From contig NW_027271753.1 in the NCBI RefSeq assembly GCF_040938485.1, forward strand, positions 868,001 through 932,000: a stretch of 64,000 nt of DNA, written 5' to 3'. This document shows, piece by piece, positions 107 to 39,991 of this stretch. Both the position numbers and the translations under genes were made by a program. The notes under the pieces were generated by a model, which made no database searches, was not told the DNA's origin, and saw only the letters and a list, made by a program, of their open reading frames with translations. The stretch comes from Diadema antillarum (taxonomy: Eukaryota). Within the stretch, counting starts at the first letter, position 1. The number at the start of each line of letters is the position of its first letter.

Positions 107-2101
107 AAGAGGGGAGCCTGGTCATCATCCTCATCCTCCTCCACCTCAAGGAGCCATCCATAGCCCTTGGTCTGCAGGAACTGAGAGGCAGCATTACCTC
201 GAGGCCTCAGCTCAGGGTCACCCTTCACCTCATCATAGCTCATCTCCCCCAAGTCCAGCTGCACATTCTTCTCTGCAATCAAAATATTCAAATGTGGTAA
301 GATCATAATTTAAGAAAATGCTGTTCCCAAGAAAACCTCATATCTCAGCTAAAATTGTAATTCAGAATGTATGACTGATATCCAATTACCAATCATCATT
401 GTCATTATGAAGATATGAAAATGCAAATTATTACAAATCTTGTCATGTGGCGTGCAACATTAATGATATAATAGGTAGCAGACTTCGAGTCAAGAAACTT
501 GAAACAGGTTAAACGCTCTCTGATATAGTATTGAATATGTAGGAAGATCTGATTTCAACAATGTGCCAGATTATTACTCATACTACTCATGAAGCATGTT
601 AGTCACTGGAAAGGTGCAGGAGTACATATTCTACACCATCCTAAACCACTATAATACTTTTCAGATCTAACTGCATGTGGCATGATTTACTGATCACAGT
701 TTACAACATATCTTATAAGAACATGAATTAAAACAAAAAAAGCAACCTCGCACAGAGAAAATTATCACAAATACATAATTTATAAATAAAAATAAATTTA
801 CCTTTCATTAGGCCTACTGCTGAAAATGTATTCAACAGCTCTAAATAATATGCTACAGTGGTACCTGTCATAATGTAATAATAATATACTAATAAAACTT
901 TATGTACAAGAAAATCTAGAATCAGCTGACACTGGACCCACTGAAATGTGTTTCATTTTTTTCACGTATCTCATGAATAATGATATTTGCCATGCCTGGT
1001 TTGCCTGTGTGTGTGCCTCATTCATTTGCAATATATGATTCGGCACGCCGTACACCGGGGTACCGTTGTAACGCGGGGTACCGCGTTGTATAGCGCCATC
1101 TCATGCCCATTATTTATAATGCGCATCCGAATTCAGATACGCCGCGATTCTGAATTCGGATACGGCAAAGTCGTCACAATGAACTAGCACCAAAGGTGTT
1201 TTTCCAAGTAATTTCTAGCACCACACCGTTTTGTAAACATCATCTACCGTAACTTTTCATATTTTTTATTTTCAGAAAAAAAAAATCACCGAAAGCCTAG
1301 AAATATTCACCCCCAAATCAACTGTATTTCTTCAAAATTTGATCATGGGGGCTGCCATCTTTATAATCTTCCACACGTGCGAGAAAATGGTCGATAATAA
1401 GATATGAAATGCGAAAGAAAAAGGTTCAGAGCAGAAATTAATTATCAGTTGCATGCATTAATTGTTGCATAATCACAAATAAGAAAACATTTTTGTGCAT
1501 AATACTACTAAAATAATACTAAAAAATATTTTGACACATTTTTGGGTAAGCCAGGGTACAGCGCTGGAAAAAAAAATAATTAATTCAACAGAATGGCGAA
1601 TATTCATTTGGTACCCCAGCGTACCAAATATTGCATCATATGTAGGCCCTAGTAGGGCATGTATATTAGGTCTAGGTCGTAGTTACTAGATCTAGTATAG
1701 ACTAGGTCTAGTCTAGTTGCAATTGCATGACACCTACCTGTGCACATTACAGGGAAATTCTCATCCTTCATCAAACCAAAGGCACTACAAAAATCATGTC
1801 ATTTATAATAAGCGCTATTATTCCCCTAGGATGCCAGCTACTGTACTCTGAAATGCTATAGACCTAGACTAGACTCTAGATTCATATTTAAGGCCTGCAA
1901 AGCAAAATTATCAGTGGGCCACCAACACCCGACAGGAAACATAATGCATGGGACTTGAGTCTACACGACACTGACGGGGCATACACGCATTCTCAACTGA
2001 TTAAATCCGGGTAAATCTTAATACTTGCCGTTGTCGCTGTTCTTTTCCCCTTGCGTTGGAGAAACAAATACAAATTCACTGGATGGTGATGTTGTAGACA
2101 T
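107..2101 (-). CDS. YIPF4: Protein YIPF4 (Yip1 family, Golgi), 5' part only: exon 1 about 2029-2101 and next clear exon 107-272; gene continues off the left edge
   Basis: Exon 107-272 (acceptor TTTTGATTGCAG, donor TT|GTAAGC) reads EKNVQLDLG...AASQFLQTKGYGWLLEVEEDEDDDQAPLL. This matches the YIPF4 signature I recall (FLRQRGYGWLLEVEDDD...KPLL). Exon 1 MSTTSPSSEFVFVSPTQGEKNSDN resembles the YIPF4 N-terminal GDFTFVS motif. The exon 1 donor is uncertain (see findings). Confidence 0.9.
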
Positions 2102-4497
2102 CGTAAAATGGGAAGAATCAATGTTATTACTCGTGAAAATGGGTGGTACAAATTAATCAATTCACAAGTTTCCACGTAAACATGAAGCCTGCCCTCTCAA
2201 GTCACGTCGTAGGTACTCTCTCAATGTGCTCTCAACACCGATCGGTGGCTCTCAATACATAATGTTGTAGGAGCTCCAGAGAGAGATAACATCTTCGGAG
2301 CAGCTCCCCGAACCTCTCCAACTCCTCAAGACTGAATTTCCTTTCCCTAGGTGCACGTTGCTCAATGTCAGACCTGTTTCTCAATGAATCAATAAGTCAT
2401 GTGTTACTGCAATGACAAGAAGTGCCAGGAAAATATTTCAACTTTTCTTTATAGGCTGTAAAAATCCATACTCAAATCAAAATCGGTTCATTATAGGCCT
2501 AGTGTACTTTTCTTTTGAATATAACGGAATATGACGAAAAATGATGTAGGCATCGCCACGTACTTTTATTCTCATATCATAAGATATCATTGATCATAGT
2601 CATCATTCCTATCAATTTTCTCAAACGTCCACCATAACCATTGAGTGTGCCTTGATGTTGTTTACACTTCAGTATATTTGTTTTTCTGCTCATCATGCAT
2701 CACTGCATCTACATGTACTTTTATCATTCGTTTACATGACTGTTTAAAACTGTATCTTGATGGTTTTGATGTTGTTTTGTCCAGCGATGTGTATTAAATT
2801 TTGCTTTTGTGAAATAACATGAGAAATGAATTAATCACGAATTCAATTCAATTCAATACAGCGTAATACATAGACCCACACATAAGTTTGACATAAATTT
2901 TATTTGCAAACATTCTAAGCTCAATTCGACACTCGAATTTTTTTTTTCAAAGTCTTCTTCATGCTGCTAAGATCATTGAAAGTAAGAACTACAAAAAGTT
3001 AATTGCAGTAATGTTAGAGATAATATAGTAGTAAAAGACAAAACCATGCGCCCTAACATGATTACATGTCATTCATCATAGACACTATACATGAGTACAA
3101 TTTACTATATCATTGTTGCTGTTTCCTCTTCTTCTGCTATGTTGTATATACCACGCTTAACTATGTCGACCAAACGCGACTGCTCTTCTTATGATATGAC
3201 CTTAATAAACACAGTACGACCCCTTCACTATAAAGAAAGAGAAAATCATATGAATTGAATATCATCATGTGTTAAATACCGTAATATTTTTTTTCCTCTA
3301 TAGAATGTTCTCTCTTTCGCATAGCAGCGGTATGATGTTGTCCGGTCCGTGACTGAAAATCCATCTGCAATGTTTAATAATCATGCTTCAACACAAGACA
3401 TAGTTGACCAAAAAGTGTAAATCGCTATATAGCCATTGTGTTGGCTGCAATTTCAGGAATGTAATGATGACAGTATAACACTTTCTTTCATGCGTTTCTA
3501 TGGTTGCTGTGAGGTTGCTATGGTAACTCTCGTCGTGATGCCTTAATTCGGTCGTCAACGAACCTCGTGGCAGGGAATAACGTTATTAATAGCCACACTC
3601 TAGTTAAAAATGATGGGCAAATAAAGACTTGCAAAAATTAAACATAACAAGTTTCTAGCAGCCTTTCTCAGTTTGGACAATTGCTATTATTTCTAATGCA
3701 CGTCACCAACTGTCCTCTAAGAAAGGCACAAAATGTGGTGACAAAGATGGACAATGAATCAAGGAAAATGGGAAAATAATTGTGATAGATAAATACGTGC
3801 AATCTTAAAACAGTGAAATCATCAAGCACTGGATTTTTTTTCCATTGATTTTTTTTTCTATTCTACCACGCTGTTAATACCTTCTTTGATCCGAGGATGT
3901 GATGATACTGGATAGACTTACTTTTTCTTTTAAATCGAGGGCTTGTCACTCACAGCTGTATAAAATCAAACCCCGTCATTTAGCGGGCTTATTTCATGAA
4001 GATGTTTGCAACGGTTTATTTAGTGGCGGATCGGGGGGAGGGGATTAATTTCGTTTAGAAAATGAACAGTGAACATCGGGAGCACCCCCTTCCCCTTTAA
4101 TTTGGGGTTTTGTGTGTGTATGTGCGCGCGTGTGTGTTTTTAATGAAAGTATCTTTTTAAATGACACCTGGATGGCATCAGAAATATAAACTGCATCTCC
4201 CTCCCCCCCCCCCCTTACGGAATGCCTGGAACTGTTCCTTCGTTAAGTTACAAATGATTCAGCACAGACATAGGTTTAAATGTTGTCAAGTTATTGACTC
4301 TTTCCAAGCTACTTCGATAATAACTGCAATTAATGCGAATTATAATCATTAAGCATCTCTTCATGAAACGGAGGCCTATAGACTCGAACATTCTTCATCA
4401 CGTTCCTTTTCCCTTTATCGCGGGTACAGTCTGTTACCCCTAACCACATTGAACCATTGATAGAGATGTGTGATGGTGAGGGGTCCATCGCGGGAGT

Positions 4498-7032
4498 TCA
4501 CATGATGGAGCACCACGAAGTAACGGAACTAGTCTCCGGTACAGCTCTTCTTCGCCGACGATGACGTCGAGGTTCAGTGCATTCACTCGATCTTTGAGTG
4601 TGATGACGATGGCGATGATGATGAGGAGTAGAGTACATGGTTTCCTCGAGGTCACGAGTGACTCGCCTACCATCAGAAGCGGCTTCATCTTGCCTCTTTC
4701 CGGAATTCACCTGTCGGGGACCACCTGCACTTTCATCATGACCTCTTTGAAAGGAGCCGCGATGAGAATCTCCTAAGTGATCTTCACTGTCGTTCTGATA
4801 CCTCGGCGACTCTCGGGTCAGACCTTCGCTTTGTCCTGGAGAACCATCAAACTTCTTACGACGTTTACGCACGTCCATCTTCTCTGGCGAACGTTCGTAA
4901 CGACTCGTTGACCCTCCTCTGGACGTGGAAGGACCTGCTCTACTCTCAAAGTCCAACTCTGAGAAGTCGGGGAACTCCCGTCTCCCTGGTGACGATCGTC
5001 TTGACCCCCGCTGTCGAGATGGAGTGGAGGATGCAATAGGGCGCTTCAAATCTGTGGAGTTAAATGTCATTATGGTTATGATTGTCAGCTTATCGATCTA
5101 AAATGCTATATAGGGGCCTATACAATAGATGTATAGTGTATTTTCAGACATCTATTACACACACACACACACACACACAAATGACGAATATTGTTCAACA
5201 AAATTTTATTAGTTGAAAACAAAACCTAATAGACAAACCACAAAATCACTTTTTATCTTCTTTGTAACATTGCGACTTTCATCAACATTTCTTGGTCTAG
5301 AGTCTATACAAACAATTTCCTTTCTTTGATTTATGTTATTGTTCCCCATCTCATAATCCCTGTTTTCTTCATCCACTTTTCCTCTTCTTCTCCCTCCATC
5401 CGTGTTTGGCATTCCTTTATGCAAGCATTAGATAGCCGCCATAACGCTCTACGAAGCTTTGGTTTTACTGTAATTCCTGCAATTAATTTCTTCTAAAAAG
5501 CATCACGATTAGCCCACTGATAACCCGATAACATTTCTGAGTATATCTTCAGTTTGTGTGGTCAAGTCTGGTAATACTTTTGATGGAATAGACCCTCTCT
5601 ACTTTAAGTTTGGCAATATTTCTGCATTTGATTTCATCTGATTTATTATATCCCGAGTGGTTCCCAATTAACGTGTTCTCTTATTCTTTTCTTCAATCTG
5701 TACGCATATATCGGATGAACACATTGTATGTTTTATTGTCTTGAGAATAAAAAGAAATGACTGTATTTCATTTGTAATATTTAATGCAGGAAATTCCCAA
5801 TAAATTCAATTGAATGGAAAATCGAAGAAAAAAATACATTTCTACATACCATTACTCCCCTTGATGTGTTCCTGTGCCTCCTGGACCCAGTTCTCTAGAT
5901 CTTGGCGGGTCAAATGCTCTCGCCCTTGTCTACTCCCACGACCCTTGGCCTGCCTGGATGGCGACTGACTTCCAGTCCGAGGACGGGGTGGAGGTGATGA
6001 TCGACGCGATGAGACTGGGCGACCCGCATCGAACTCGACCTCTTTTTCAATCATTCTTCTTTCTGGAGGAGGTGACACACGTGGGCTTTCATCCGTTGGA
6101 CGAGAATCGTCAAAGTTCTCAGTCGTCCTTTTCGTGTCACGAACAACGAAATATTCACGGATGTCTTCATCGACCACGGACGAGTTTCTGGTGAAGCGAT
6201 CTGGGGAAGGTGACGGCTCGTGATGGGCGACAGAATGATCAGGCGGCGACACATGCTGGTTGGTGACTGGAATATCGAGCTCCTTCACATTGATGGTCAA
6301 AAGGGGACGCGGTTGCCCCTCGGCTGGCAAGTCTCCGCTGCCGCATAGCGTCAAATTGCAACCATCTTTTGCAAGCTTGCCCAGGTCTATGCTAATGTTC
6401 TGTCTCGAGTCCACATAAACAGGTCCATCTGAGAACATAGTGCGTCCCATATGCGTCTTCTTACTCGAGTGTGAGTTGCGATAAGGTTTTCTGGGGGAGC
6501 GTACTGCGGTCTGACGAGGTGGACGAGGTAAAGTCACTTGGCGACTTGGCGATTTGCCACGAGATGCTGCTCGACTTGATCGAGCACTCCTCGGCGAGCT
6601 AAGCCGAGAGGATCGCCGACTCGATCGACGACTACGTGATGATGCCCGAGATGGAGCTCGGCTTGGCCGGCTGCTTCGCCGCGGAGAGCTAAGTCTGCTC
6701 GACGGACGGCGCGACTTTCGTCGTGCTGACTTCGACAGCGATGTAGCATGACTTGGCTGTCTGCGTCTCCTTTCTGTTGGAGAATTCATTCGAGATGAGG
6801 GCCGGCTCGAACGTGGGCTGTTCGGAAGGATGTACAAATGTTGCGATATCACTTCAAGGAGGTGTTCACCGATTCCATGCACGGCCAGTAATTCATCTAG
6901 ACTGCTAAAGTTTCCTAGGCGATTTCTTAGGCTCAAAATGCGTCTCGCAAGGGGTTTTGTCATCCCTTCAACCATGGTCAGCTGATCCAAGGCGCAGCTG
7001 TTTATATCCAACCTTCTTCTGGTACAGGGCAT
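4498..7032 (-). CDS. Uncharacterised 578-aa protein, join(5850..7032,4498..5051): ComEA-type HhH domain, R/S-rich basic region, disordered region, C-terminal CaaX (CSIM)
   Basis: ATG at 7032 in an ACC-ATG context. Residues 8-69 (LDINSCALDQLTMVEGMTKPLARRILSLRNRLGNFSSLDELLAVHGIGEHLLEVISQHLYIL) fit the HHH_3/ComEA pattern. Donor AATG|GTATGT at 5850/5849 and acceptor TTTAACTCCACAG|AT at 5052/5051 are both phase 1 and join the two long ORFs in frame (GSN-D-LKRP). The protein ends WCSIM-stop. Confidence 0.8.
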
Positions 7033-8100
7033 GGTGTCGTTTCTTTGGTAACAGTGCAGTTTTACCTTTAATAATCCTTCATAAAAATGCGCAGATACTA
7101 AGCAGGAAGAGTGAAATGGTAGACTTATCAAATCACAGGACAGGAAGTAAACTCACCAAAAGTCATATACAGCGTATATAAGTCGTTGCCAAGAAATTAG
7201 CCATTAGCGCGCACAGTATAACGTGCGTACAATAAACATCTGCGTCGAGACGCGTTGTCATAGGAATCATCTGTTGGCAATATAGTTTAGTGAATTGTTT
7301 CACGAATAAGAATTGTAAATTGAAAGGCATATTATGACTTCAAAAATGGGGTGTACAAAATGTCACATGCTCAATGTGTTAATAATATAGGATGCTTACA
7401 ACGTTTTCTTGTCATTTAAGTACTGTCGGTGATGAGTTTCAAGTTTGTTTAATAACTATTTAAGCAGCAATAAAAGAGAACTACGAATAAGGAAATGTTA
7501 CATTGAAAATCCTAAAACGCAAGAATGATGTTTGCGTTACTAATTATTCACTCTTGCTAACTAAATGAACTATATTGCAAAAGTTTGTAAATGTTTACTT
7601 TGATTGTTTTGTTTACTTGACATGTTTAGAATCTTTTGCTTATGCTGCATTTTACATTTCAGAACACTTGAATCGAATAATATTCAGTTGATTTTTTTTT
7701 GTTATGTTAGTGGGCCTATTTGTCTTTATTCGGAGACCATTTAGTGCTGCCTTTTGACACTGATTTTTTTTTCGCCACGTTTCGTAATCAGATGATTTTT
7801 TTTTCTGAGTTGTTCATTATTGTCATAATTTTTGAACTTTTGTTGATATTGATAATTATACTGCAGCACATGAATTTATGTTATCATATTGCGTGTAGTC
7901 TTGTTAATTAGACTAAATTGTATACTTGAAAATGATTGTATTGAAGTTATTCCCAGTATCCTATATTCATTATGGTTGCCATAGAAGGGGACTCGTCGGA
8001 AAGTGTTCTTGGAAGAATGGTGGAAATACATGTATCCATATAGGTCTGCAATATCTCATCAAGGTGGTAGGCCTACAAGGTGAGACTGCCCTAGTACCTC

Positions 8101-10078
8101 TTCTTCTTCTTCTGATTAAGTCTGCCTCCTTCAATAGACTGAAGATTCTTGCAGACTGGTGCTATTTACATTATAATACAATTTATTTACAGATATTTAC
8201 AAGCACATAGAAAATTTGACGAAAATACTAGCCACTGTGATCAACCGTTAGACGGTTTCGAAATGATCCCACAGATGGCGCTGAAACAATTTCTGACGAC
8301 AGGGAATTCCAGTTCCTTACAGTTCTTGGGAAGAACGAATGGCGATGCGATTCAGTTCTCGAATATGGTACCTGATAGGAGTGTGGTTGCGAGGCTCTCG
8401 TTAACTGAGTAGCCTGTTTGATGATATAGTCCTGTGCTGAAAGAGGAGTGAGATTATTGTGTATTTTGTACATCATAATTAACCTGTCATTTTCTCTGCG
8501 CTGTTCCAGAGTGGTCCAATTAAGTTCTTGTAGCATTTTGGTGACACTCGAGGTGTTATGGTAGCGATTTAAAGTGAATCGCGCAGCTCTTCTCTGGACC
8601 ATTTCCACTTGGTGGATTAGGTTCTTGGTAGATGGGTCCCAAACTGTGGAAGCATACTCAACAATTGGTCGAACCAATGTTTTGTAAGCTGTGGCTTTAA
8701 CATCAGAAGATTTTATGCGAAGATTGCGTTTTAGAAATGCAAGCACGTTATTGGCTTTATTGACAGTATTGTTGATGTGTTGGGTCCACTTCAAATCAGA
8801 AGTGATGGTTACACCCAAGTACTTCACGGATTCAACAGATTCAAGAGGGGCGTTATTTAGATGATACACGTGTTGCACCTTACTTCTTTTCCTGGATATC
8901 GTCAAAACCTTACATTTATCTGTGTTCAAATCCATCATCCATTTTTTCGCCCAGTCACCAATTTTGTTTAGGTCCTCTTGAAGATTTTGCGTATGATGTT
9001 GATTGTCGATAGTCATGTAAGAAATTGCATCATCAGCAAAAAGGCGAACCTTTGACGCGAGACCATCAGGCAAGTCATTGACGTAAAATAGAAAGAGGCA
9101 AGGCCCAAGAACCGACCCCTGAGGCACTCCAGATCCTACCGCTACTGAAGAAGATTTAATACCATCCAAAACGACCCTCTGACTTCTTCCATTGAGAAAA
9201 CTTTGAATCCATTTCAGATTTTTCCCCCTGATACCGTAGTAGTCCAGTTTACGTAAAAGCCGCTCATGCCCAACCTTGTCAAAAGCTTTTGAAAAATCCA
9301 TGACTATAACATCCGTTTGACGTCCTGCATCCAAGTTCCTATGTAAATCGCTTGTGAAACCAAGTAATTGTTGTTCACATGACATGTTCTTACGGAAGCC
9401 ACATTGCAGGGGGAAAATGATGTTATTTTCGTCCCCGTGCTTCATAATTTTGCTCGCTAAAGCGTGCTCCATTAGTTTACAGCAAATACATGTCAGTTGA
9501 ATGGGGCGGTAGTTTACAGGAGTAGATCGATTACCTTTCTTGTAGACTGGTACAACATTTGCTTCACGCCAATCATTTGGTATTTCACTTAATTCATATG
9601 ACAACCGGAATATATTGCAAAGAATCGGAGCCAGAATTTTTGCCAGCTGCTTCAAGACTCGTGGAGTTATACCATCCGGTCCAGGGGCCTTACATGTCTT
9701 CAAACCACAAAGCAACTTCTCTACACCCTTTGATGTAAACAAAATATCCTCCATTTCTTCAAAGTCTGAGGTTTCCGGTAGTAAGTCATTCGGTATGGGA
9801 GTTTCCTTGGTGAAAACACCTTTGAACTGTTGGTTTAATGCTTCAGCTTTTGCAATTGGATCAGTGATCGTAATACCATCACTTTTCAGTTCTCTTATTC
9901 CTGTATTATCAGTTCTGTTGTGTTTGATGAAGCCCCAAAATCTCTTCATACTCTCAAATTCTGTGGTATCTTCATCGATAGAAAAAAGAGATTCCACATA
10001 ATTCCAATAAGCCCTCCTTAGCTCCTGTTGCAGTGATTTCTTGACTGCTTTCAACTCTTCCTCCAATTGAAAAGGGAC
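8101..10078 (-). mobile_element. 5'-truncated non-LTR retrotransposon (LINE, CR1/L2/jockey-like ORF2) with intact RT domain; endonuclease domain absent
   Basis: Uninterrupted ORF 8228-10093 (GTG start) with KAPGPDGI, YRPIQL, QCGFR, DFSKAFDKV, GVPQGSVLGP, LFADD and C-terminal SFFPRTVRNWNSL motifs. A (GAA)n tail lies at 8101-8112. Candidate 6-bp TSD TACCTC at 8095-8100 and 10079-10084. Confidence 0.95.
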
Positions 10079-10169
10079 TACCTCCTTGATCACACTAAAA
10101 ATTTCAGTGATGCTTCATTGATCAGTGTGAATGGGGAATAGGAAGCTTGTGGTGGCACAACTTCACATC

Positions 10170-10347
10170 ATCCCATACACCACTCGGATCGCATCATCGC
10201 ACCGAATCGTATCACGTCTGCGTAAAAGCAAAGTGCAAGCGTTATATTGTGCGAGCCGCGTACTATGCACAGAATCTTTACGTCGCGTCGGCTCGTCGGC
10301 TCAGCTGTTCTTGCAGACTGACTAGTGACTAATGTGATCGGATCACC
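10170..10347 (+). promoter_or_regulatory. CpG-rich segment immediately upstream of the BABAM2 start (promoter or 5' UTR)
   Basis: Local run of many CG dinucleotides in otherwise CpG-poor DNA, directly before ACC-ATG at 10348. An acceptor-like TGTTCTTGCAG ends at 10316, so an upstream non-coding exon cannot be excluded. Confidence 0.5.
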
Positions 10348-25502: not shown

Positions 25503-25839
25503 ATTAATGGTAAAAATTTGTACAAAATGAGTTTTTTTTTGCAATTTGTACAAAATGAGTTTTTTTTTTGCCTTTTCGAGGATGTAAAATTTGTGCTCGA
25601 ACCGAAAACGATTATTATTGGTTAAACTTTACACCGGCGCGGGAAAATCTCGAAATTTTGGGCTTGGGCATATCGATATTGGGAATGTCAGAGAATTAGA
25701 GATACATTTACTTTTGTAGTCATGTACATTCCATTTTGGGGGTTTAGCGTGAGATTTCGTTTATCAGAGTGAGACAGTCAAAATTGGTTGAAATGCGTGA
25801 GTCTCGCGCTCAATGCGTGAGAGTTGGCAGCCCTGTGAT

Positions 25840-26045
25840 GGGTGGTGTGTGTGTGTGCGTTTGTTCCTGTTGTGGGTGTAAAGTGAAATATTGTGTTGGG
25901 GCAACGGATACTTTGCGTGTTTGGCTTGTTCGGGATGGTGGTGGTGGGTGATGGTGGTGTGTTGGTGATTGGTGGTGTGTTGGTGATTGGTGGTGGTGGT
26001 GGTGGTGGTGTGTGTGTGTGTGCGTTTGTTCCTGTGGTGGGTGTC
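25840..26045. repeat. Compound (GT)n/(GGT)n low-complexity repeat with a duplicated GTGTGCGTTTGTTCCTGT segment
   Basis: Direct reading; this explains the spurious T/H/P-rich ORFs here. Confidence 0.85.
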
Positions 26046-27199
26046 TCCGCAGTTGCGTGGGGGGCTCGTGACGCGGGTCCGCTCATGGCGGCCTCCAGGG
26101 AGAATTCCTGGGGTTGCATCTCTTTTATTGACTTCTTTGTGTTCCGCATGAATGATCCCGAGTCGCTTAGCCTTTTCATGCCAGCCGTTTTCTCTAAAAT
26201 CTAGAGAAGACAGCATCCAAACATCATAACCACATAATGTTGGGTGATGTGAAAAGGACTTGCGCGAGGAGACCAAACCGTTTATAGTTCTGTTCAAGTG
26301 CCCACAATCTATCTACAAAAGAAAGAATTAACCCCCTCGAAACCACATTCCCAGAGTTCCAGGGATTCTGTATAGGCCTACAACAGGTTGTGAATAGTGA
26401 TGACAGTTTCAATACCCTAGTGGTAGACTTTTCCCGTCGTAAAAAGAGACTTCGTCCCCATGTATTCTACCAGTATGGTCGAGGATTGAAGCTTAAAAGA
26501 CTGGAGTGGACAATGGATAATGCCAACCAGGTTTTCCATGCAGGCTGCGTAAGAATACAGTTTAGTGTAGAGGCGTTCTACCCGTATTCATTCGCTTCGC
26601 ATTTAAAAGAGGGCAGGCGTAGACACAAAATGTATGAATACAAGTGTCACGCCCCACCCTTAAACTAAAAACAAACAAAGCATGGCTCAAATCGTCCCTG
26701 TCTAAAATTCATTACTTGAAGTATGAGATCTGTAATGTACACTTCAGACAAAAGTTGTTAACATGATGAGCTCCCATCTGTTCATGAGTACATGAACTGT
26801 TCATGCCTGAATAGCCGCTTTGAGACGCAATTTTCCTTCTCCTAACACTGGTTATTTCTCCGATGAACTCTTTGGCACATTTTGTTTTAAAAAGGTCACA
26901 TTTAAATACAGGAATACAAAAATTTCGTTTATTAAACCATTCTTTAAACTATCATGGAGGCTGTTGAAGTCCCCATTTACACGCGAATACAGCCGTTATA
27001 TTTCTTTTAAGTGGTTTTAGAATTTATTACTGTAGGCATGTGTTAACATCACAGTTGGACGAGAATGTGCAGTGATATGAACGTGGGGTAAATATTTTGT
27101 TGTCGGCCTGGTTTTGTTTTGTTGAGGATAGTGGTAGTATACAAGTGGTCGTGAGTGATAGGTAGGCATGTTTTAGGTACATATATAATGGTAATATAG

Positions 27200-32277: not shown

Positions 32278-32786
32278 TTATTCACCACTGTCGAGAACCT
32301 CAGCCTTCTGGACGTGACCGTCTCCGGGATTGTCGAGGTCGACGACGTCATTCGCGTAGTCGGACGCGACCTCTGCTTGAGCAAGTTGAATGGCTCGTAC
32401 CGGGACCCCGACGTCTAAGTCGGCGGCAACCTCAGCAACCTGATCAAAGTCCAGGTCATCGGCAACGTGCTCACCGGCCACTTGTGCCTGGCCCATTTGT
32501 ACAGCGCGAACGGGTGGGACGACGGCGTCCGTTGTCTCAGCCCGCTGTCCTAGGTCGATGACGTCCTTGCATCCATCGGACGTGATGTCGGCCTTGCCTA
32601 GCTGGACGGCTCGGACAGGGGGACTGACGACGGTCTTCAGGTCGTCTGCTCGCTGCTCCAGGTCGTGGACCTGTGGGCCGTGATCGGTGGCGACATCAGC
32701 TTTACCCAGCGTGACAGCTCGCACCGGCGGAGGAATTGTGGGCTGAACTTTGGCTTGGTGTACTTTGGTGAGCGGCTTAGCTTCGA
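32278..32786 (-). CDS. Terminal coding exon of an uncharacterised acidic protein with four ~36-aa repeats (PVRAVxLGxAxV...DL); 5' exon unresolved
   Basis: GC-rich ORF 32278-32832 in AT-rich flanks, with four diverged peptide repeats that vary at synonymous positions. Phase-1 acceptor TCAATTTGTCCTCAG|TC at 32787/32786. Confidence 0.75.
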
Positions 32787-33414
32787 CTGAGGACAAATTG
32801 ATGATATCGGAAAATGGCGATTTAAAAGTCATTATTCGGCTTCTCAGTAACCAATCTTATGTCGGCATATAAGTTTCTGTGTGGATGTTTGTTTCATATC
32901 GCTCATTATGAAAATACCATTCTCAAAAACATTAGTCTTATGACTAGAATCATTGATATAAAAAAGATCAGTTGAGATACAGCTTGTAGATGATGCAGAG
33001 AAGTTAAAGTTAGTGAATCAAAGATTTTTTTGCTTACCTCGAAAACTTGGAAGCTATGATAAAAGTAGCCAGCAGTCGTTAGTAATGTACAGTGCAGTTG
33101 TGCGCCAAGCCATTTTGTTCTCGAAATCGTGGAAATCCGCCCTCTATGTCCGCATGCTTGTAAGTTTGTTGTGGCCAGAAGCTTGTCAGTGAGAGAGCGG
33201 TCTGGAAGCTGACATGCATTAGGAGATCTCGGCATTCGCTGTCTGCATATCTCATTCATCATTTGACATTCAAGAGGACTTATTCATGTTTCAGCAATGT
33301 GTCACAGTATGAACGTCTACATAGCTGTCTACGTCTAGCGGGCTGGAGGTTAATGCATAAAGCAGCTGAGAGGAAAGTTAGTGGTTTGTTACTTATACTG
33401 TTTACCTAAAGTAC

Positions 33415-39409: not shown

Positions 39410-39991
39410 TTAGACTAAGTAGTGGGACACCCTACCTAGGTCGTCATGCGACTCTACGATTACGGGTCTGTAGCCCACGGTAACCCTCTGGCGCCTGGTT
39501 GGGAAACTGCCGTAGAGGTATCCATGCCCGTAGCCTGGAGAGTAGATATCGGTGTAGCTGTTGGGGTAAAACTGCGAGTAGCGAGTTGAAGCTGGTTTCC
39601 TCTGCTTTCTGGGGGTACTGTAGGTTCCATAGTAACTTCCAGTGCGGGATAGGTAGTCACGTGATGCGTAGTAATACGGGTCCGCTTCGCGTAGCCCAGT
39701 CGTTTCGCCGATGCGCATCAGGGAGTTGCGGTAAGATGGCGGAGGGATCAAATTGTTGGCGTTTGTCAGGGATTTTCTCGGGGGAATCGTCTGCGGTACC
39801 ATGTAGCGGGACTTCACGCTTTCGTATGCTCGCTGTTGGTAGGACTTTCCAGCACCCGTATAACTGCTTGAAACACTGGAACTGCTTGATGGCAGTGGAG
39901 TGCGAGCTGTTGGTGGGACCGACTTCGATCTCCTCTTACGTCGAGGGACCACAGGCGTGTAAGCTGGCGTGTAGGCTGCACTATAAGACAT
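39410..39991 (-). CDS. Uncharacterised 193-aa Ser/Tyr/Arg/Pro-rich low-complexity protein
   Basis: GC-rich ORF with CCAACC-ATG start, preceded by an acceptor-like TCTATTGTTACCAG. Contains PRRKRRSKSVPP and a Tyr-rich C-terminal half. A possible internal phase-1 donor CTAG|GTAGGG lies at 39436. Confidence 0.75.
   Translation of the reverse strand: MSYSAAYTPAYTPVVPRRKRRSKSVPPTARTPLPSSSSSVSSSYTGAGKSYQQRAYESVKSRYMVPQTIPPRKSLTNANNLIPPPSYRNSLMRIGETTGLREADPYYYASRDYLSRTGSYYGTYSTPRKQRKPASTRYSQFYPNSYTDIYSPGYGHGYLYGSFPTRRQRVTVGYRPVIVESHDDLGRVSHYLV

Follow-up and report, generated by a model that had tools for sequence, protein, structure and literature searches.

We analyzed a gene on the minus strand of a 64,000-nucleotide (nt) stretch of the genome of the sea urchin Diadema antillarum (NCBI RefSeq assembly GCF_040938485.1, contig NW_027271753.1, positions 868,001 to 932,000; here called the window and numbered from its first letter). 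The gene encodes a 578-amino-acid (aa) protein that starts with a helix-hairpin-helix (HhH) domain and closes with the tetrapeptide CSIM, and comparison with its relatives suggests that this end is probably a genuine, selectively maintained CaaX prenylation signal. The protein would thus be a new lineage-restricted member of the known CaaX class with an unusual architecture, in which an HhH domain, an Arg/Ser-rich (RS) region, and a CaaX box are combined. CaaX proteins form a small, heavily studied class with few nuclear members beyond the lamins, and in this uncharacterized protein a head of the DNA-binding type is linked to a tail carrying a putative lipid signal by ~500 mostly disordered residues. 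We found no paper on this protein, nor any that links HhH domains, CaaX boxes, and sea urchins.

Gene structure and the C-terminal CSIM end

Read directly from the letters, the minus-strand open reading frame (ORF) at 4498..5070 terminates in Trp-Cys-Ser-Ile-Met followed by TGA. This is an exact match to the CSIM-stop end given in the initial annotation, whose end coordinate for the element, 4580, lies a few bases past the peptide it quoted, an immaterial difference. Upstream, an ATG at 7032-7030 in good context opens a long ORF that bears the HhH domain. A donor at 5850/5849 and an acceptor at 5052/5051 join the two exons in frame, with one base and two bases of the split codon forming GAT, and the resulting coding sequence is 1737 nt long. 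The features of this model are as follows (a slash within letters marks an exon boundary).

4498..4500, minus strand: stop codon TGA, three residues past the Cys and in the same place in all relatives
4501..4512, minus strand: putative CaaX box CSIM, Cys575-Ser-Ile-Met578; the Cys is invariant, and orthologues end in CSIM, CSIA, CSVL, or CTIF
4513..4515, minus strand: Trp574, directly before the CaaX Cys and invariant (W179, next to C180, in the nine-sequence alignment)
4516..4545, minus strand: polar/acidic spacer, 10 residues plus the Trp in Diadema and 10-13 residues in all lineages, by alignment and count
4546..4569, minus strand: basic cluster RRHRRRRR, aa 556-563, residues 12-19 upstream of the Cys
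4852..4869, minus strand: the other dense basic cluster, RKRRKK (aa 456-461), with the shape of a classical nuclear localization signal (NLS), in a segment that the Lytechinus proteins lack
4498..5051, minus strand: last exon, aa 395-578, phase 1 acceptor ccacag/AT, predicted to be fully disordered
5052..5849, minus strand: intron, 798 nt, GT..AG, at a position common to the camarodont gene copies
5850..7032, minus strand: first coding exon, aa 1-394 and the first base of codon 395, with the ATG at 7032-7030 and donor G/GTATGT
6835..7014, minus strand: HHH_3 helix-hairpin-helix domain (PF12836), aa 7-66, predicted with high confidence (score ~90; see below)
6433..6825, minus strand: Arg/Ser-rich disordered region, aa ~70-200, from composition and structure prediction
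6271..6432, minus strand: small conserved beta/alpha unit (NISIDL..GCNLTL..TINVKEL), aa ~201-254, prediction score mostly ~67-79 with dips to the 50s
5860..5907, minus strand: conserved helix (L-x-R-x-D-x-ENW), aa ~376-391, prediction score ~70-78

Gene models made by others agree with this join. When the first exon was used in a word search, it retrieved an NCBI entry, "uncharacterized protein [Diadema antillarum]" (P0002, 550 aa), that is 100% identical over the aligned part and differs from our model solely by removal of an 84-nt GT..AG segment, 6587..6504, in the Arg/Ser region, and also a 579-aa protein of Diadema setosum (P0001) that is 95% identical. In the NCBI models of both species the HhH part is linked to the tail, and both models have WCSIM as their C terminus. 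Overall, the two parts are joined in the annotated models of five species and lie in an unbroken frame on one contig from another species, and the camarodont contigs continue into an intron after RIDRG, at the same intron position as in Diadema. The initial annotation had allowed for the tail exon being expressed alone, an alternative that is unneeded since an in-frame splice connects this exon with the HhH exon and the five species' models agree. We also rejected its expression from the ATG at 5070, which lies within the intron upstream of the acceptor.

The 84-nt segment on the minus strand (6504-6587) is spliced out in the NCBI model for D. antillarum and retained in that for D. setosum; it is either an "exitron"-type alternative splice or an annotation artefact.

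For the analysis of the C terminus we aligned the last exon of nine sequences, the tails of about five lineages, all of them sea urchins. In addition to the Diadema proteins, the relatives found were as follows.

S. purpuratus XP_030855553.1 (NCBI): 571 aa, ends WCSIA
L. variegatus XP_041461435.1 and XP_041461732.1 (NCBI): 533 and 534 aa, end WCSIA
L. pictus protein (NCBI): 537 aa, ends WCSIA
P0017, tail exon of a transcript assembly (Logan): 182 aa, ends WCSIA
P0003 (L001), transcript contig of run SRR6173504, 2142 nt, whole frame unbroken (Logan): 595 aa, ends WCSVL
L002, low-coverage genomic contig (ENA assembly): collinear pieces, ends SWCTIF-stop

The Cys at position -4, whose loss in orthologues had been named beforehand as refuting a CaaX box, is invariant in 9 of the 9 tails, as is the Trp at -5, and every protein stops three residues after the Cys. 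Together with one Arg of the basic cluster, these are the only three invariant columns of the alignment, and they lie in tails that share 24-38% identity with the Diadema tail outside the genus and in which indels are frequent. Within the box, the a1 position is Ser or Thr in every tail, the a2 position is Ile or Val, and the X position is limited to M, A, L, and F among the compared tails. The gene is present in S. purpuratus and Lytechinus, which are model sea urchins, so that its function is directly testable there.

The two L. variegatus proteins are encoded by near-identical gene copies on one 66-Mb scaffold, and in one of them the basic cluster is altered to HRQRMR while WCSIA is retained.

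This end has the features of a CaaX substrate, with the Cys exactly fourth from the C terminus, an aliphatic a2 residue, and an X residue compatible with a prenyltransferase. Phe at X is accepted by both farnesyltransferase (FTase) and geranylgeranyltransferase I (GGTase-I), as in RRAS2. Met, Ser, Ala, or Gln at this position directs a substrate to FTase, and Leu or Ile to GGTase-I (PMC13524398). The earlier identification of CSIM with the farnesylated box of prelamin A also holds, as green fluorescent protein (GFP) fusions ending in CSIM carry a farnesyl group (PMC5946110). When AlphaFold2 was run on a seven-sequence alignment, the mean predicted local distance difference test score (pLDDT) was 47, and the last exon (aa 394-579 in D. 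setosum numbering) scored below 50. The CaaX box is thus predicted to sit at the end of ~185 flexible residues, and disorder of the tail would leave it accessible. Judged from these sequence features, prenylation of the sea urchin HhH protein is very likely, and the CSIM end is very probably a real membrane anchor.

Several observations weigh against this reading. In a single sequence the motif carries little weight: of the stop-to-stop ORFs in the six frames of the window, 3.4-3.6% have a Cys at -4 and 0.5-0.7% fit the pattern C-x-[ILV]-[MSQALF], and it is through conservation that the motif exceeds chance. That conservation is itself partly shared ancestry, with relatives that are all sea urchins and a phylogenetic depth limited to Echinoidea at most. 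A hypergeometric test for three invariant columns among the last five, in four lineages, gave P = 0.02-0.06, a modest value because the remaining invariant columns hold abundant R, S, P, and D residues within a tail of low complexity. All tails have Ser or Thr at the a1 position, a choice that FTase does not impose and that also fits a class I PDZ ligand, and the basic cluster and the HhH domain each carry a further point, given below. Finally, a search of sequencing runs found no RNA run holding the gene, only DNA runs of a ~96% identical relative; three of these cover the intron and have unchanged CSIM codons, and they bear on neither expression nor splicing. The stronger argument for selection on this end is qualitative: the two rarest residues are kept at an unchanging spacing from an invariant stop across about five lineages, and their neighbors change in compatible ways only.

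The protein is very rich in Arg (16.4%) and Ser (16.3%) and has only two dense Lys/Arg clusters, RKRRKK and RRHRRRRR. The initial annotation had read the latter, together with the prenyl group, as a K-Ras4B-type membrane-targeting signal. A basic cluster is indeed conserved: it keeps its place in the relatives with a His-x-x-Arg-Arg core, and His559, Arg562, and Arg563 (D. setosum numbering) are invariant in four lineages. Its position makes that comparison a loose one, however. In K-Ras4B a Lys run directly precedes the Cys, whereas no polybasic run lies within ~10 residues of the urchin Cys; the alignment places the cluster at -12 to -19, followed by acidic residues within a polar/acidic spacer of 10-13 residues in all lineages. 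The two proteins share a CaaX box ending in Met with an upstream basic run and differ in the placement of that run and in the GTPase domain, which the urchin protein lacks. The cluster may be a weak electrostatic helper, an NLS, or something else.

The HhH head and the rest of the protein

Pfam recognized only HHH_3 (PF12836; E = 7.6e-13, 48.8 bits against a cut-off of 27) in the window protein and no family in the last exon. In the AlphaFold2 model, the HhH domain (aa 5-70) has a pLDDT of ~90, the other structured parts are the beta/alpha unit at aa 202-255 and one helix at aa 377-392, and the remainder is disordered. The closest solved structure to the HhH domain is EEPD1 (9yi2; E = 1.2e-18 by profile and 8e-12 by single sequence), both of whose HhH units align to aa 5-68, and the second-best solved match is ComEA (8dfk; E = 4e-9). 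EEPD1 and ComEA are both membrane-attached proteins that bind DNA. The isolated (HhH)2 domains of EEPD1 are not stable DNA binders alone (PMC12988330), so a lone HhH unit need not bind DNA.

A profile search of the whole library matched 28,055 proteins at E <= 0.001. Beyond the HhH domain, only urchin sequences matched among the best 150 of these 28,055 profile matches, and word searches likewise returned echinoid sequences only; these best 150, which extend to E = 4e-23, are filled by multi-HhH bacterial proteins, and a weakly similar orthologue may have been missed. The ESM Atlas gave no usable match by features for either the whole protein or aa 195-579, and its structural matches beyond the HhH domain had template modeling (TM) scores below 0.25.

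Among the relatives, S. purpuratus and Lytechinus proteins (P0154, P0008, P0160) are labeled by NCBI as "serine/arginine repetitive matrix protein 2" or "serine/arginine-rich splicing factor 4-like", names that rest on composition only. The domains recorded for the relatives are PF12836 and, in some, PF00633 (HHH). We rejected an identity as an SR splicing factor or SRRM2, as there is no RRM or cwf21 domain, and the composition-driven names "SRRM2" and "SRSF4-like" are corrected by this assignment.

Membrane attachment and alternatives

In the mechanism we propose, a cytosolic FTase would attach a C15 farnesyl group to Cys575, and the relative ending in CSVL would receive a C20 lipid from GGTase-I instead. 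Cleavage of the three terminal residues and methylation of the new Cys carboxyl would follow, as in the general CaaX pathway (RCE1/ZMPSTE24 and ICMT). The lipid, aided by the invariant Trp574 and perhaps by the conserved Arg cluster, would hold the ~185-residue flexible tail on a membrane, and the N-terminal HHH_3 domain and Arg/Ser-rich region would be left free for nucleic acid binding.

As the target of such an anchor we tentatively favor the inner nuclear membrane, by analogy the likeliest location, given the strongly basic character of the protein, its NLS-like clusters, and its DNA-binding fold. GFP fusions ending in CSIM are found at the nuclear envelope when they have an NLS and in the cytoplasm when they do not (PMC5946110), and both GFP-NLS-CaaX and Kugelkern act at the nuclear membrane (PMC2947476). 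It is conceivable, though doubtful, that the family is a sea-urchin-only, prenyl-anchored tether of DNA or chromatin at the inner nuclear membrane, which would place it beside the lamins and Kugelkern as a third kind of farnesylated protein of the nuclear envelope. If this were true, an HhH head of the ComEA/EEPD1 type would be combined with an RS region resembling the one in the lamin B receptor, a lipid would replace the transmembrane domain, and such a tether might act in the large nuclear remodeling of urchin gametes and zygotes.

Each of the known systems that the protein resembles differs from it in other respects. It shares with prelamin A the same CSIM box, and both with it and with lamins of the B type a flexible tail end and NLS-like basic clusters, but it has neither the intermediate-filament rod nor the Ig fold of lamins, AlphaFold2 shows no long coiled coil, and no ZMPSTE24-type site like that of prelamin A is evident in its tail. 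A relationship to lamins was rejected, since rod and Ig fold are missing, Pfam finds HHH_3 only, and no lamin-like match occurs among the best 150 of the 28,055 profile matches. Kugelkern is largely unstructured. It differs from the urchin protein in having a coiled coil and no HhH domain and in belonging to insects rather than echinoderms; we claim no homology and set the two side by side by description only. ComEA, the bacterial competence DNA receptor, has a transmembrane helix at its N terminus as its anchor and acts outside the cytoplasmic membrane. It resembles the urchin protein in joining HHH_3 (PF12836) to a membrane anchor, putative in the latter, but ComEA lacks both an RS region and a CaaX box, whereas the urchin gene is an animal gene with an intron and its HhH domain begins at residue 7. 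The likeness to Kugelkern is that of a protein of a single animal lineage that has both an NLS and a CaaX box at its C terminus (PMC2947476), and as of 2010 no farnesylated nuclear protein other than Kugelkern and the lamins was said to be known (PMC2947476). EEPD1, a vertebrate protein, has similar HhH units and is also lipid anchored (PMC12209743). In contrast to the urchin protein, it has two (HhH)2 units, an EEP domain, and an N-terminal lipid at Gly2; the urchin protein has one HHH_3 domain, starts with Met-Pro-Cys/Lys, has no EEP match in Pfam, and bears its lipid signal at the C terminus. The same DNA-binding module would thus be fixed to membranes by different lipids, through N-terminal acylation in EEPD1 and a C-terminal prenylation signal in the urchin protein.

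The main alternative to the inner nuclear membrane is that the protein is prenylated and anchored elsewhere, at the plasma membrane or endomembranes, as K-Ras4B or EEPD1 are, which by analogy we consider possible but on the unlikely side. EEPD1, the closest solved HhH match, is a myristoylated and palmitoylated protein of the plasma membrane (PMC12209743, PMC5321112), a short NLS-20-CSIM construct reached the cytoplasmic membrane as well (PMC5946110), and there is a conserved Arg cluster upstream of the Cys. However, that cluster is 12-19 residues away behind acidic residues, NLS-plus-CaaX constructs localize to the nuclear envelope (PMC2947476, PMC5946110), and an Arg content of 16%, NLS-like clusters, and an RS region are features that drive nuclear import in other proteins. 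Even with a prenylated end, the anchor might be transient, if after farnesylation the tail were cut at or near the basic cluster, in the way that prelamin A is cleaved by ZMPSTE24 15 residues ahead of its farnesyl-Cys, so that the protein body and a short farnesylated peptide were released. Identity of the box to that of prelamin A and a cluster-to-Cys spacing that stays at 10-13 residues amid an indel-rich tail are consistent with such a cut, but the tail has no conserved hydrophobic pair like that in the Tyr-Leu-Leu site of prelamin A, neither Pfam nor the best 150 of the 28,055 profile matches showed any similarity to lamin tails, and relatives end in CSIA, CSVL, or CTIF. CSVL implies a geranylgeranyl group, which is not known for the prelamin A cleavage pathway and further counts against a transient anchor. 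We regard this course, drawn from analogy with prelamin A, as quite improbable.

Two other explanations dispense with the lipid. The conserved end could be a class I PDZ ligand (SIM, SVL, SIA, or TIF), a free C terminus that docks on a PDZ scaffold without lipidation; every tail has Ser or Thr at -2 from the end and a hydrophobic final residue, and conservation of a Ser/Thr that FTase does not need is otherwise unexplained. A PDZ consensus leaves the invariant Cys at -4 and Trp at -5 unaccounted for, however, and the uncommonness of Ala, Met, and Phe as the last residue of class I PDZ ligands also counts against it. In addition, all four X residues suit prenyltransferases (PMC13524398 for Met, Ala, and Leu), and CSIM is farnesylated in cells (PMC5946110), which would remove the PDZ ligand. 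We consider a PDZ ligand improbable. Finally, the motif could be functionless and kept by relatedness and too little divergence time, in keeping with relatives that are all sea urchins, the modest hypergeometric result (P = 0.02-0.06), and a Cys at -4 in ~3.5% of random frame ends. Against a functionless motif, identity to the window's tail falls to 24-38% outside Diadema with many indels, yet the Trp-Cys pair and the stop position are fixed in about five lineages and the two variable positions have changed to compatible residues only, and we find this explanation the least probable of all. A conserved CaaX signal remains our preferred reading of the CSIM end.

Sequencing runs and the surroundings of the gene

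The three DNA runs that hold the gene (X1-X3) were compared with the window with 5148-5188 left out as a repeat. They have an overall difference of ~4% and an extra CGT (Arg codon) at 6589, as in the D. setosum protein, and their likely source is D. setosum or a species close to it rather than the window species. At 5561-5851, which lies mostly in the intron, contig depth in these runs rises from ~30-50 to 500-17,000 with many loose ends, suggesting that a highly repeated short element adjoins the donor site. The interval left out of the comparison is a (TG)n microsatellite (5148-5188, intron), and a poly-C run is found in the 3' flank (4200-4216). Elsewhere on the minus strand, three ORFs of 177-193 aa (32278-32832, 39410-39991, and 25764-26297) have no Pfam match, and a 621-aa ORF at 8228-10093, ~1.2 kb upstream of the start codon, contains RVT_1 (E = 2.3e-36) and belongs to a retroelement of the long interspersed nuclear element (LINE) type.

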